The translations under genes and the position numbers were made by a program. A DNA stretch of 64,000 nucleotides from Parasitella parasitica NRRL 2501 (Eukaryota; Fungi; Mucoromycota). Positions 27,716 to 36,463 of this stretch are shown in pieces. Location of the stretch: contig MU619245.1 in NCBI GenBank assembly GCA_025201805.1, forward strand, positions 192,697 through 256,696, in the 5' to 3' direction. Below the pieces are notes generated by a model. The model had not been told where the DNA came from, did no database searches, and saw only the letters and a program-made list of their open reading frames with translations. Numbering within the stretch: position 1 is the stretch's first letter; every line of letters starts with the position of its first letter.

Positions 27716-29270
27716 TTATTCAGGCATCTCGAAACCCTCTTCCGCCATCCAAATGGATACAATACGGATACAAGCTTGTGCAATCATGTGGTCCTCTAGA
27801 TCGTCTTTGGTCCCCTGCATGAATTTCAGTAGTTCCATAACGACATCCATCATATCAGAAAGCGTCGTGCGAATCTTTAACAGCATCTCGGAATCCATGC
27901 CGTTAGATTCGCAATTCGCTGCTAAATACTCCATTGCTGCTTCCAAAATCTCAAAATAGACAGGCACCATAATTTCTTGTCGCTGCTGCTTTTGTTTATT
28001 TGTGATCGTCTTCTCTTCGTTGTGCTCTTGGATCACTCGGTCATTGATGTTATCAATCATGATTTTGGCTTCAATTGCGACGAGATGAATCAAAAGGGCA
28101 GGGAAATTGGCAGCAGCATATGCCTTGTTGGCAGCATCGTTCATGTTGTCTGATGAAGCTTTCTCTTTTCTGCGTTTGCTCGATTTTGTGTCTTGCAAAC
28201 TCTTAAATAACCACTCGTTTCCAAAGTAGCGCAATAAGCATGCGATCAATAAGATTGCTTGGTCTCTTTGCGAGTCGTCTGGTTTGTACCGGTAAAATAT
28301 CAGCGATTTTGTCATGAACTCTTCATCCTAAATTTACTTACGCAGCTTGCTGCTCATGATCTGCCGTAATCCACCTAATAGATCATCCAGCCATCCATCG
28401 ACCTTTTTTTCTTGTTCTTGTTTAAATTGTCTCATCAGCTAGGTGAAAAACAGATCAAATTAGAGCCATGTCTAGACCTACAGCAAGCCAACCTACCTCG
28501 CTAGGAATACCTGGTAAAACAGTAGAAAGAATGTTCAACGCTTCAAACTTCAGTATTTTCTGATCATTATTGAGCGTTCTCGACAATATCGCAACCAAGG
28601 TGGTTAGAGAGTATTTCAGAGCAGAAGACAAACTGGGGATTTTCTCTGAATGCAGTAGTTGACAAGATCTCGTATACACCGAATTTATCAACTGCGTGCA
28701 CATTTCTCTTTCCATGTCCTTGGATGTCTGCAACAGTACTTGAAAGATATTCCTCAATACATCAGGATCCAACATTTTCACAAGCCCTTCCTTCTTGACA
28801 GCAGCATGCAGCAGAATTTGCATGCTTTCTAGTGTGATGTCTGATTCGTCGTTTGGCGTTAAATGTGATAATGCGGGTATTCTATCCACCATCGGCTGCT
28901 CTGTAGCTAACGCTTCAAAACGTGCAAAGCAGCTCAACACATTAACAGCAATATCCTTCAACACTGGATCCGGCACTTCAGCATCTTCATTATGTGCTGG
29001 TGGGGGGGGGGAAAGAAATTGCGTCAAAAAGCTAAAACAACACACCATTAAATGCACACACATACTTGTTCGAAGTAACCGCTCAATAAACTTGAAGTTC
29101 ATTCCTTTAAAGACTCGCTCAATGTTTTCTGGATCGTTGTGCTCCAAAAGTTTGGGGAGGATCAACATGCCCACAAACTTCATTTCATCAGAAGCAGATG
29201 GCACAATCATCGATAGGCATCTATCAATCTCGGCAGATCTGTCGCGTGCTGAACTGGTCACTGTTTCCAT
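27716..29270 (-). CDS. Neurochondrin-family ARM-repeat protein
   Basis: EIDRCLSMI...SDEMKFVGMLILPKLL, FIERLLRT, IAVNVLSCF and C-terminal ACIRIVSIWMAEE. Three introns. Confidence 0.8.
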
Positions 29271-30684: not shown

Positions 30685-33000
30685 ATGGACAAACCTTCTC
30701 AAACCAAACCTTACGCTGGATTAGTTATATATCGTATACAGAGAAACGTAGAGTTTTTATTGTTGAACGACTCTTTTTCAAATAAAAAGCATTGGTTCTG
30801 TCCCAAAGGACAAGTGATTGGAAATGAAGATGAGATCAAGTAAGTTGTTATGGAGAGGGGGATATTTCTACTTTTACTTAGTAGAAAACATAGATGCGCA
30901 CTTCGCGAGACACACGAAGCCACAGGCCTTGGCCCTAAAGAATTAAATATAGAAGAAGGATTTGCCATTGAACTCACGTATTTATCAGGAACAAAGTACG
31001 TATGCAATGGCGACCGACGCTCGCAATTCGATCTAATGTTTTCCTTTTTACTAGACCAAAGAAAGTCAAGTATCATTTGGCTCAGTTGACCGATAGCCAT
31101 GTAAAACTACTGCCAGCAGAGGGTGTTTATATGCAATGGTTCAATCAAACAACTTGTTCTGAAAAAGTTGTATTCAAGACAATGCAAGAGGTCTTTAAAC
31201 ATGCTCAGACTTTTGTTGATTCGAAAAAAAAAAAGTTTTCCGGCCGCAGTAACCATAGCCACTACAGTCAACAGCAACAGGAAAAGTCTGAAGTAAAGTC
31301 TTTGTGCATTAGCGGTGAAGATGGTACTAAGGCTATGTATAAGCCCCGTCATAAACAGTTTCCACAGCAGACCCATCAGTTGCAGCCACCGCAGCAGCCA
31401 TTAGATGCTCATCAGCAACCGTCCCCGTCCTCACAAAATCAACAGCAGAACTCGCCGCTCTACAAGACAAGGTTATGCGAAAGATTTGATACAGAAGGAA
31501 GTTGCCCCTATGGATCTAAATGTAACTTTGCTCATGGTATCGTTGAATTGCGTGGTAGAGTAGTAATGGATGTGTCACAACCACAATCACATCAACAGCA
31601 CCAGCAAGATAACAACGATGATCGTATCAATAACGATGATTCAAACGGCAATCAGCTGTTTAAAACAAAGCTTTGCGAGAAATTCATGAAAGATGAATTC
31701 TGCCAATATGGTCCAAAATGTCATTTTGGTAAGTTTTGAGCACAACATTACTAGACTATTACTTACAAAATAAAAGCTCATGGTGAAGAAGAGCTGAAGT
31801 CGAGGCCAAAGAAAGAGGAGACAGCACCTATTGCGGATCGACGCCCTTCTCCTCCTTTGCAACAACAACGTCACCAACGTACAGTATATGCTGAAAATGC
31901 AACGAAGCATGCAGCGAGTGATACGCACAATGAGGAAGTATCTGATGCGGATAGACGTACGAATTGGAGATTGACTGCAACTGACAAGCACGAGCACATG
32001 TATGTATATATTTACATGAATAGATTAGATACAAGTAACCAATTAATGTTCAATTTAGTGACATCTTGAAGAAAACTGAGCTTGCTGCTGAAACTAACAC
32101 TCAAAAGCTGTCAGATTTATCTGTTCACAAAGCTACCAAATTTAACGAATTGAGATCTGTTAATACCAGCGAAAAGAAAGAAGATCGTTCATCTGTTGCT
32201 GCTGCACCTATTTCTGTAGAGGAGCTCCGCCGACCAGCATTTGTAGAACATCAACGTGGCAGTAATAACAACAAGACATCAGCAGCAATAGCTACTTTAG
32301 CTATTCACAACAATTGCAATACTAAAGAGAAGAAACATGCTCCAAAAGTTGAAAACAATGAAAAATCATGGATGAGGATTGTCAAATTATCCAAAGAAGA
32401 ACAAGATGAAATGGAAAATCTATCCAACAAATCTGCCAACACTCCAGACATTTCTAAATTAACTCAAAAAGAAGCCATTATTACTGACTTGAAAAAATTC
32501 TTCTCTTCAAATCCGCCTTCAAGCGCTAGTACTAAGGGCAAACTTAAAGATGACGTGAAAGAAGTAACGAAAATTGAAATGCGAAATGATTTATCAAAGA
32601 AGCAGCTTTTGTATATTTTATTAGTGAGCCTTTTGGAGGACGAGTCAGATCAAACCATGTTGAACATCTTGAAATCAAGAGAGCATCTCTTTAAAACCGT
32701 AAGTTCGTATGCAGCCACCTGTGCAATTGTATTGATCCACTTTTAAATAGCTTGTCAAAACGAATGCTGATCAGAAATTACTACTGAAAGCCTGGGAAAG
32801 CTTTGTTACTGTTCGCAAACCCGTTATGGTAAACAAGACTGCAATTGCTTTATCTCATTGGTATGACCGTGAAATGGTTGAAGAAGAAGCATTTTTAGAA
32901 TGGTTTCAAACACTTGAGAAAGCTAGTGCGCTGGAAAAGAAAAGCTTCAAGTTCATCGAGTGGCTGAATGAATCAGACAGTGAAGAAGACGAAGAATAAA
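30685..33000 (+). CDS. Fusion protein: NUDT2-like Nudix domain + two CCCH zinc fingers + C-terminal W2 (eIF5C) domain
   Basis: Exon 1 30685-30839, exon 2 30894-30995 and exon 3 from 31055 splice in frame to give [14 protein letters not shown]...[29 protein letters not shown]...[10 protein letters not shown]. Then YKTRLC-x8-C-x5-C-x3-H and FKTKLC-x8-C-x5-C-x3-H. Ends [15 protein letters not shown]...[18 protein letters not shown] at 33000. Confidence 0.88.
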
Positions 33001-33079: not shown

Positions 33080-34566
33080 TTATTGCTCGTTATTAGGTTT
33101 GGCGCCACCCATAGCTTCTTGGGCCCTATTTTTTTTTGAAAATAAATCTTTTTAGTTGCATAGTTCAAAATGTTCTGAATGTCACCTACAATCTTCTCAT
33201 TTCAGGGTCATTCATCATTTCTTCGATATTGGGTGTTTCTCCATTACCACCACCCATCATTTGTTGGGCCCTACATGTGTGCATGCGTTAGTCTAAACAA
33301 ATAGTGTCATAACTCTTAAAATACTTTACATTCGAGTAATATTAGGGTTGCTCATCAAATTGTTTAGAGCGCCTGATTGCATCATTTGTTCCGCCATTCT
33401 CATCAAACCAGGATTTCCAAGCAAAGAGCTAAGATCGGGCATACCACCAGCGCCACCAAAGTTAGGCATCCCACCATTGTTAGATTCAGGAACAGCACGT
33501 TCAACACTGCCAGAGCCCAACTTGGATTTAGCAGTAGCTAAAGAATTTTGAAGAGTAGCATTATTGGGATCAAGTTCCAAGCCGTTTTCGTACGCCTTGA
33601 CAGCATCTTGATACTTATTTAAACAGAAATAAGCGTGGCTATTATGAACATGATCAGGGTAAATACATCATTTAGTATGAAATAGATACAATAACACTAA
33701 CCCCATACGACTATAAGCTTTACTATACTTGGGATCGACTTCAATGGCCTTTTTAGCATCATCGACAGCCTTTTGGTGATCACCTTGTTGACTATAAGCG
33801 GCAGCACTAAAATGTCATGAGTATATGCATAACTCGACATGTCCCTCTTTCTCAGCCCGTTTATTCTCTTACCGGTTAGCATAGTATACAGCATTACTAC
33901 CATTAAGAGCAATCGCCTCAGTGTAAAACTTGATGGCTTCAGGGTAATTACGTTCTGCAACCTTACGGTTACCCGCAGCCTTCTTCTGCTCAGCAGCTTC
34001 CTTGTCTTCTTCACTAATTGACGTCTGTTTCAAATATGTGTTAGTGTTCAATCTTGTGCAGCTTCTACAAAATATTTACATCTATCAAACAGAAGAAATT
34101 CATGTGAGACACTTTGTTGTACATGCACTGTTACAAATAACAATAACAAAAACTTACTTTCAACCTTGGGGGCAGTAGAAGCAGCGGATGCAGCAGCAGG
34201 TGACTGAGAACAACGCGTCAGATATGTAGCTAGTGTTTGATCTTGATTTTCCATTTTATTTACCTTGGTAGACTTTTTTGTGTTAAGATAAACATCGAAA
34301 ATGGAAAGCAAATTAGCAGGCTTAGTGGTATAGAGCTCCTTTTGTGCTTCATCAGCAACATCTACACCAAAAGCTTCGCCAATACATTGCATGGCAACTA
34401 AAACAATGTTATTTTCGACTTTCTCTCATTTACAAATGAATAAGTTATTAAATTTACCTTCAATACCCTCAGAGTCATCCTTGCTGATGGTTCCATCTTG
34501 GCAAGATTTCTGCAAGAATTCCAGGATAGAATAGACAAGAGCCTTCTTATTTTCAGTAGCAACCAT
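33080..34566 (-). CDS. SGT2: SGT2/SGTA small glutamine-rich TPR co-chaperone
   Basis: [12 protein letters not shown]...[16 protein letters not shown] dimerisation domain, three TPRs ([19 protein letters not shown]) and an STI1-like Met/Gln-rich C-terminus. Confidence 0.93.
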
Positions 34567-35349
34567 TTTATCTCAGTATTATACTAACAAAAGGAGTAAG
34601 AAAAAGAGATTGTGCCCAAAAAGTGCCAGAAAATTCTTTTTTGATATTATTATTCAATATTTTAAATGTCCACCTGATGTGAAAACTGCCAGTATTGCTG
34701 TTGACTATACATTGTAAGCTTTGCCAAAGAAAAATGACACAACAGTTTGCTGTGCTGATTTCAAAAGAACTTCAATAGTTGAAGCAAGCATACACGAAAT
34801 AGGATCTTGAACTTCATACTAACTAGATCAGCAGCAGCAGTAGCAGCAGTGGTAGTAGTAGTAGTGGTAGTATATTAGTACAATAGCAATTAGAATGAAG
34901 CGGCGATGAGTATTTGCAGATCTTGTTCAAATACGCACATAATCAACTATCTTTGTAAATCATATTTGGGGGCTGAAAAAATCAAGCTATAAACCTATGA
35001 TGCTGTAAATGATTTCGAATAAAATATATGCTCATGTGGTCGCAAGGATTGGATGATGGCATCAATACAGTGATACTTTATTTATTCAAACAGGAACTAA
35101 ATTTGCTACTAACCGAAATAGCTGTTATCTTTATTCTGATACCATTGAATCAAGTTTTTTTTGCAAATATTCAAAAACAGTAATTTGTAAGATTTTATTG
35201 GCTAAGATAAAGACTTTTTTTTTATATTGTATGTATGAAATTTTGATAGCAATGTTAAACTAAAAAAAAACAAAAAAACTATAAAAAGTCTCCTCAACTT
35301 TTCTTTTTTGTTTTACCTTTTTTTCTCTCAATTTTCATCATATAATAAA

Positions 35350-36463
35350 ATGTGTAAACAACAAGCTGGGAAAGGATCAATCTTTGTATCTGGAGCTGAC
35401 GGTGATAAAGGCGTAGCAATTGTTCAACAACTGTTGCAACTACCTGCACAGCACAAACATTTGTGTCCTCAACATGTCTATGCTGGTTTACCTGATGCCA
35501 CTACGCCTCGAGCTAAATCAATCAAAGGCTTAGGTGCTCAAGTAATCGCATTTGATATATTTAATGACCATGAAGCTGCTGTAGAGGCTCTTACTGACAT
35601 CACCAAGCTTTGCTTATTGATTGATCCACTGAGCGAAAGGATGCAACGATCAAACGCCTATTCGTACGGCAAAGCGTAAGCCCTTTATTTGTTTTTGTTT
35701 ATCATTGATAATTAACTCTGGAGCTCTTAGTTTTATCGATGCTGCGAAGGAAGCTCATGTAGAACATATCATATTTTTAACACCTTTCACACCACTTGAT
35801 GCTGTTAGCCCACCTGCTTCTCCTAACAGTGAGCAACAGGCTACTCCCGCACCCGTCAGTTATGGCTCTTACCGATCTCAATTTATGCTTATTGAGTCTT
35901 ACTTGCACTCACAGTTTGATAATAATCGCATTACTATTTTGAGGTATCCCGGCGTACTGCACCAACATTTGCTCGTTTTTAGCAAATACATCGCTCAACA
36001 CAATGCTTTCCCATTACCTGATAAGCATTTGGAAATTACAGTTGAATCTTGCAACATGTATGACATTGCGCGAGCAACGGCTTGTGTTGCTCATTCGCCA
36101 ACTTTGCGTCATAGTAGAAATGCCTACAAGATTTCATCTAGTTTATTGACTCTGGAGGAAATGGGCCAACGTGTTCTTTCTGGTTTGCAAAGAGAAAACA
36201 CTATTAATCGCATGGATAGCGCTACTTTGCAGCAAATTATCTGTGATAGCATTGGAAATGAAGACCAAGCTATCTTTTTAATGGAAATGTGGGGCCTTCA
36301 ACAAAAGTTGAGCGGTCGACGTTTAGAAATAACAAGAGACCTGGAAGCACTTACGGGACAAAGCGGGAAATCGCTGAACGAATATTTTGAAGAAGACGAA
36401 GTACGCGATGCCTTCTTATCTAGCCATAAAAATGGTGAATTGTCTTCATTCAAAGTAGCTTAA
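35350..36463 (+). CDS. NmrA-like atypical short-chain dehydrogenase fold protein
   Basis: IFVSGADGDKGVAIVQQLL Rossmann start, YGKA/FIDAAKEAHVEHIIF across one intron, and DLEALTGQSGKSLNEYF C-terminus. Confidence 0.75.

Follow-up and report, generated by a model that had tools for sequence, protein, structure and literature searches.

A subfamily A Nudix-CCCH-W2 gene of Parasitella parasitica and the degenerate Nudix box of its fungal family

A six-exon gene with one reading frame

The window analysed here is a stretch of 64,000 nucleotides from contig MU619245.1 of Parasitella parasitica NRRL 2501. At 30685..32999 on its forward strand it carries a six-exon gene whose 680-residue product combines a Nudix domain, two CCCH zinc fingers and a W2 domain, the composition of fungal NUDIX subfamily A; the spliced frame and a database record both support it, and all parts of the gene given below lie on the same strand. 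The gene is flanked upstream by a neurochondrin gene (27716-29270, reverse strand) and downstream by an SGTA/Sgt2-like TPR gene (33189-34566, reverse strand). The order neurochondrin, subfamily A gene, SGTA is identical in Mucor circinelloides, where there follows an NmrA gene that probably matches window open reading frames at 35308-36463 (forward strand).

Exon 1 (30685..30839, aa 1-52) encodes the N-terminal part of the Nudix domain with the pocket residues His36 and Lys41 and the first half of the Nudix box; exon 2 (30894..30995, aa 52-86) the Nudix helix and Tyr81; exon 3 (31055..31728, aa 86-311) the C-terminal part of the Nudix domain, a Q/N-rich linker, finger 1 and most of finger 2; exon 4 (31777..31999, aa 311-385) the end of finger 2 and a variable linker; exon 5 (32059..32698, aa 385-598) more linker, a conserved Trp motif and the N-terminal half of the W2/HEAT domain; and exon 6 (32751..32999, aa 599-680 and the TAA stop) the Pfam W2 region. 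The five introns are all GT-AG and 48-59 nt long, and all have counterparts at matching positions and phases in M. circinelloides. Intron 1 (30840..30893, 54 nt, phase 2) falls within the Nudix box at a position common to Mucor, Rhizophagus and the chytrid Cladochytrium; intron 2 (30996..31054, 59 nt, phase 2) and intron 5 (32699..32750, 52 nt, phase 0) are kept in Mucor and Rhizophagus; and intron 3 (31729..31776, 48 nt, phase 1) and intron 4 (32000..32058, 59 nt, phase 2) are matched in Mucor.

The sequence-only reading had proposed that the fragmentary open reading frames hide a single GT-AG-spliced frame, and this is what we find. Joined for a local frame check, the six exons give 2043 nt, i.e. 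680 residues and a stop, with no internal stop, and retention of any one intron creates a premature stop. The peptides of all six exons occur one after another in the stored P. parasitica protein BD408DRAFT_410223 (P0001), which likewise has 680 residues. Beyond the frame check, the window was searched by single exon; full-length searches, folding alignments and structure predictions used homologues of other species, and the stored 680-residue record served in local alignments and in the tree.

The proposal of one Nudix-CCCH-CCCH-W2 chain holds as well: although the Nudix exons singly miss Pfam NUDIX, eight of ten full-length homologues reach it alongside CCCH and W2. Three homologues, moreover, have frames of 671-723 codons without interruption, on assembled contigs of seven sequencing runs. 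Two such contigs also carry, in convergent orientation, a neighbouring homologue of the SGTA/Sgt2-like gene that lies downstream in the window; it too is free of introns, whereas the window copy has them, and the contigs are thus best read as spliced transcripts. The case for a single transcript encoding the whole chain is indirect but strong, and the domains are joined by low-complexity linkers in one spliced chain. Separate genes for the Nudix, CCCH and W2 parts are rejected on the uninterrupted homologue frames and the conserved introns, and a broken pseudogene on the intact frame and the conserved splice sites.

The architecture was already in print. Pasterny et al. (2025, BMC Genomics 26:606, PMC12210691) described fungal NUDIX 'subfamily A' as 84 proteins, most with a W2 domain and two zf-CCCH fingers, related to NUDT2 and expressed in Mucoromycota, Mortierellomycota and Glomeromycota, in a proteome set that includes another P. 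parasitica strain. The window gene is an ordinary member of this catalogued subfamily: it has NUDIX, two zf-CCCH and W2 in one chain; it carries W37, P40, G42, Y81, K88 and F75 at the NUDT2-type Trp38, Pro41, Gly43, Tyr82, Lys89 and post-box Phe; and its box fits the published consensus in having a non-acidic residue at the last glutamate (Ile in the consensus, Ala61 here). The homologues as a set agree with the published proteins in architecture, box consensus, phyla and NUDT2 ancestry, with no structural difference. The earlier description of the architecture as hidden and new therefore fell, and its novelty is largely removed; the accompanying statement that no protein of this architecture had been characterised is right as regards experiments but not as regards the literature. 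The paper does not discuss the RNA and eIF2 modules.

Our profile search, with 8000 candidates scored, retrieved 118 proteins. Named members come from Mucorales, Umbelopsidales, Endogonales, Mortierellales, Glomeromycota, Basidiobolus, Dimargaritales, Kickxellales, Olpidium, chytrids and Neocallimastigales, and eroded members, which Pasterny et al. do not report, are present in Blastocladiomycota; among the named matches of the search, none was from Dikarya or from outside the fungi. The Nudix tree (midpoint-rooted, with no rows removed, and whose deep forks should not be read) groups Mucorales, Glomeromycota and Mortierellales each together, so vertical descent fits. Two Coemansia records (P0221 and P0267) have a quinone oxidoreductase fused at the N-terminus, which is probably a merged gene model because the two are adjacent, separate genes in sister strains. 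Homologues bear automatic names such as bis(5'-nucleosyl)-tetraphosphatase, NUDT2, Cth1p and even acyltransferase, which are probably misleading.

The zinc fingers and the W2 domain

Finger 1 (31461..31535, aa 222-246) is of the C-x8-C-x5-C-x3-H type with a YKTRL lead-in; finger 2 (31659..31781, aa 288-312), with an FKTKL lead-in and its His encoded beyond intron 3, follows after 46 residues. Exon 3 matches Pfam zf-CCCH above cut-off in two stretches (E 1.3e-15), and the nearest PDB structures to the single fingers are those of TTP/TIS11d. As in the Tristetraprolin (ZFP36/TIS11/Cth2) family, there are two C-x8-C-x5-C-x3-H fingers, and they share the Tyr and Phe stacking positions that are established in RNA binding by TIS11d; given these conserved positions, the fingers likely bind RNA. 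The ZFP36 family has an 18-residue spacing and a YKTEL lead-in (PMC12710939), whereas the subfamily A spacer runs from 26 to 102 residues among homologues, and Arg or Lys stands at the corresponding place of the lead-in in all homologues shown. A TTP-type NOT1-binding pattern occurs in just 1 of 111 homologues, and the motif is absent from the window protein. The two TIS11/TTP-type fingers of the sequence-only reading are therefore TTP-like singly but do not form a TTP tandem domain, membership in the TTP family is rejected on spacer and lead-ins, and the TTP nonamer cannot be assumed as their target motif. Elsewhere in the genome (L051:199-1026, G000:C18) there is a canonical tandem zinc-finger gene of the TTP/Cth2 type, whose fingers are 18 residues apart.

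Upstream of the W2 domain, the otherwise variable linker holds a conserved short motif, K-S-W-M-[KR]-[VI]-V with a short helix (32363..32413, aa 487-503), whose strict pattern is found in 52 of 111 homologues. Its identification with the DWEAR motif of eIF5 was rejected by inspection, and a pattern search found neither eIF4E-binding nor PAM2 patterns conserved among homologues.

The W2 HEAT domain itself (32468..32996, aa about 522-680) comprises a helix with K552-E553...E558, AA-box 1 around the W648-equivalent region, and AA-box 2 with W669 and an acidic tail. A W2 domain with both acidic-aromatic boxes had been claimed from the sequence, and this is confirmed: exon 6 matches Pfam W2 above cut-off (E 2e-13), the box tryptophans are invariant (108/108 in AA-box 1 and 107/107 in AA-box 2), and a model of a homologue C-terminal domain (pLDDT 87) matches the C-terminal domains of eIF2B-epsilon, eIF5 and DAP5 over 136-158 residues. 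The fold search places the eIF2B-epsilon domain at the top (Z 17.7, rmsd 2.6, 158 aligned, and Z 16.5), followed by eIF5 (Z 15.3, 15.0 and 14.0). Signals of W2 ancestry are split, with structure pointing to eIF2B-epsilon and sequence profiles putting eIF5 first.

Having a W2 fold is not enough to establish the binding partner, since the W2 domain of eIF4G1 binds MNK and not eIF2-beta. Like eIF5, eIF2B-epsilon, 5MP/BZW and DAP5, subfamily A has a complete W2 HEAT domain with both boxes at the extreme C-terminus, and its AA-box 2 Trp is the equivalent of eIF2B-epsilon W699 and eIF5 W391, two residues important in binding eIF2 (PMC3877758). Because the C-terminal domains of eIF5, eIF2B-epsilon and 5MP1 share a common mode of K-box binding on eIF2-beta (PMC12439599), eIF2-beta is by analogy the default candidate partner. 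Unlike these proteins, subfamily A lacks a GAP domain, a DWEAR motif, an LbH domain, the N-terminal HEAT of 5MP and MIF4G, and it has a family-specific conserved face on the helix corresponding to that of yeast eIF2B-epsilon E569. There, Glu553 (conserved in 101/110) aligns without gaps with the glutamate of the genome's own eIF2B-epsilon that matches E569, and the neighbours of this residue are altered (R574 to an invariant Glu, L568 to Lys, S576 to Arg or Lys); a Lys-Glu pair occupies this position in human eIF5 as well. The genome encodes separate eIF5, eIF2B-epsilon and 5MP, beside which the subfamily A W2 is an extra W2 domain. A fifth W2 locus, distinct from all of these (L018:340-2133, G000:C2:267371-270613), has its W2 domain internal to a 598-residue open frame and corresponds in the Atlas to an unnamed 928-residue cluster commonest in Zoopagomycota (score 0.90).

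A degenerate Nudix box and a conserved pocket

Homologue alignment and fold place the NUDT2/Ap4A-hydrolase-derived Nudix domain at 30706..31217 (aa about 8-140, exons 1-3). The ancestry that the sequence-only reading assigned to this domain is confirmed: exon 1 has five PDB matches, all to asymmetric Ap4A hydrolases (best E 2e-4); the homologue domain matches human NUDT2 with E 3.8e-17; and structurally its model (pLDDT 86) comes nearest to the C. elegans Ap4A hydrolase (Z 21.0, rmsd 1.6, 131 aligned), with the Plasmodium enzyme at Z 19.8. The likeness to the human, C. elegans and Plasmodium proteins includes the HWxxPKG motif and the equivalents of Tyr82, Lys89 and Phe128.

The Nudix box (G42-L64, 30808..30930, across intron 1) is degenerate. 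It keeps E48, R56, E57 and E60 but has Ala61 (30919-30921) at the last glutamate; in human NUDT2 numbering, Glu57, Glu60 and Ala61 correspond to E58, E61 and E62. Of 111 aligned family domains, 109 have a residue at position 61, and in none of these rows, which are not independent of one another and count near relatives and incomplete records among them, is it acidic (Ile 56, Leu 15, Ala 14, Thr 12, Val 9); the complete GX5EX7REUXEEXGU box is accordingly absent from all 109. An alignment-free motif count gives the same answer, with an acidic last box residue in 0 of 97. All five stand-alone NUDT2s compared (human, worm, Plasmodium and two from arthropods) have EE; this control set is small because, apart from the two arthropod proteins, the search for stand-alone relatives yielded mainly fragments. 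The E58 equivalent is lost in 34 of 109: it is replaced by Asn in Glomeromycota, Ala in Umbelopsis, Val or Ser in Dimargaritales and Val or Ala in Spizellomycetales, and is also lost in one Mortierellale. Human NUDT2 E58A is inactive (PMC8616924). A further difference from NUDT2, beside the fusion to RNA-binding and W2 domains, is that its Glu130 is Ser, Thr or Asn in subfamily A.

The pocket, by contrast with the box, is kept: His36 in 89/106, Lys41 in 104/107, Tyr81 in 110/110, Lys88 in 111/111 and an aromatic residue (Phe or Tyr) at 126 in 110/111, positions whose NUDT2 counterparts have phosphate- and adenine-binding roles (PMC4734340). What is new here is the family-wide loss of the last glutamate and the repeated loss of the E58 equivalent, with the adenine/phosphate pocket retained. 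The consensus on sheet S3 of PMC12210691 has Ile at the last glutamate and agrees with the homologue consensus that we computed; the conclusion of a pseudo-enzyme was not drawn there. From these substitutions the Nudix domain looks catalytically disabled, and the published and database annotation as Ap4A hydrolase is probably wrong. Against a dead enzyme, the window protein keeps E57, E60 and the E110 equivalent (E108), and Asp29, which is specific to the family (100/105), could substitute for the lost metal ligand. The Paraphysoderma member (Blastocladiomycota) has lost box and pocket alike while retaining the fold signature, so that ligand binding is not universal in the family.

A precedent for a non-catalytic Nudix domain in an RNA-processing protein is CFIm25/NUDT21, which lacks the second and fourth glutamates (Leu and Ile, the latter at the last box position) and binds Ap4A at 2.4 uM without hydrolysing it (PMC2425470). 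CFIm25 belongs to another Nudix lineage, stands alone and acts in nuclear 3'-end processing, and is a functional analogue only. As for Ap4A metabolism, no stand-alone NUDT2 was found in the genome, where the remaining weak matches belong to Nudix proteins of other kinds whose boxes are complete. At L047 (G000:C115:7176-7544) it encodes an Apa1/Apa2-type Ap4A phosphorylase (PF09830; motif HxHxQ); in yeast, an enzyme of this type takes the place of a Nudix hydrolase (PMC7705103).

Candidate roles in translation initiation

The reading that we favour over the others, at about even odds, is a pseudo-hydrolase that would link bound mRNAs to eIF2-beta and whose Nudix domain would bind either a nucleotide or the 5' end of an RNA. 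Such a protein would act on translation initiation and not as an enzyme, and would have been passed on by vertical descent among early-diverging fungi. The sensing and eIF2-engaging arm of the sequence-only reading, which this resembles, is thus the part of that proposal that remains most plausible. Its fingers may recognise short single-stranded A/U-rich elements, and may do so semi-independently because the spacer between them is long and variable. The AA-boxes of the W2 domain would bind the K-boxes of eIF2-beta in competition with eIF5, eIF2B-epsilon and 5MP, and the supply of eIF2 to the bound mRNA would thereby be changed. By analogy with CFIm25, the Nudix domain may hold Ap4A, ATP or a triphosphate or cap-like RNA 5' end uncleaved, serving as a sensor or as a 5'-end clamp. 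As to the effect on targets, 5MP-like repression by competition is slightly favoured over DAP5-like help, since neither a domain for binding eIF3/eIF4A nor a GAP domain was detected in the subfamily A protein. A stronger version, which we regard as unlikely, sees an ancient fungal receptor in which the dead NUDT2 domain recognises Ap4A (or else the cap-like 5' end of an RNA) and the W2 domain gates eIF2 on mRNAs chosen by the fingers, a system lost or not detected in Dikarya.

Other readings of the Nudix domain turn on what the conserved residues are for. Pasterny et al. suggested, from conserved pocket residues and docking and with no experiment on the protein reported, that subfamily A maintains Ap4A levels like NUDT2 (PMC12210691); an active hydrolase of this kind would keep Ap4A low, with fingers and W2 placing it near translating mRNA. 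The conserved pocket into which Ap4A docks, the standing of the gene as the sole NUDT2-subfamily gene found in the genome and the three acids left in the window protein speak for it, but docking shows binding and not catalysis, the genome has its Apa1/Apa2-type phosphorylase, and the last box glutamate is gone from 109 of 109 sequences, the E58 equivalent being lost repeatedly as well. The former corresponds to C. elegans Glu56, which we take to be the most critical catalytic residue, and we judge an active hydrolase quite unlikely. Alternatively, the domain may be a protein-binding or dimerising scaffold that senses no nucleotide, making the protein a plain RNA-to-eIF2 adaptor. The many family-specific invariant positions outside the NUDT2 pocket (Cys53, Arg/Lys103, Gly109, Gln130) and the Paraphysoderma member, with its fold but no pocket, would suit this; Tyr81, Lys88, Lys41 and the aromatic 126, near-invariant from chytrids to Mucorales, rather fit a ligand site in use, and a mere scaffold appears unlikely too.

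Two further readings start from the other domains. In a TTP-like decay factor, the fingers would pick AU-rich mRNAs and the Nudix domain would decap or dephosphorylate them for Xrn1, for which the TTP/TIS11d-like single fingers and the trimming of PPP-RNA for XRN1 by NUDT2 (PMC8616924) offer precedents. This matches the decay or decapping arm of the sequence-only reading, which is weakened by the loss of the catalytic glutamate across the family, by spacers of 26-102 residues in place of 18 with KTRL/KTKL in place of KTEL, and by the missing NOT1-binding motif; with a true 18-spaced TTP gene on contig C18 besides, we find it very unlikely. A W2 domain derived from the catalytic domain of eIF2B-epsilon could instead make the protein a mini exchange factor tethered to mRNA that recycles eIF2-GDP locally. 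Glu553 is the equivalent of yeast E569, the E569D change in eIF2B-epsilon abolishes exchange and the C-terminal domain alone is the minimal exchange unit (PMC3877758), and the fold search puts this domain first; yet the equivalents of R574, L568 and S576 are all replaced, human eIF5 shares the Lys-Glu, and sequence profiles favour eIF5, which leaves a local exchange factor highly improbable.

The main value of the analysis is a corrected reading: the label Ap4A hydrolase, which databases and PMC12210691 give to these proteins, stands against the family-wide absence of a catalytic glutamate. If the pseudo-hydrolase reading is true, the fungi that carry the family possess an unusual sequence-specific RNA-binding protein with its own eIF2-beta docking domain. 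If Ap4A is bound but not cleaved, the long-standing problem of how Ap4A acts as a signal in eukaryotes opens to direct test in a fungus amenable to genetics, and if the receptor reading is true, one protein would link the alarmone Ap4A to transcript-specific translation initiation.
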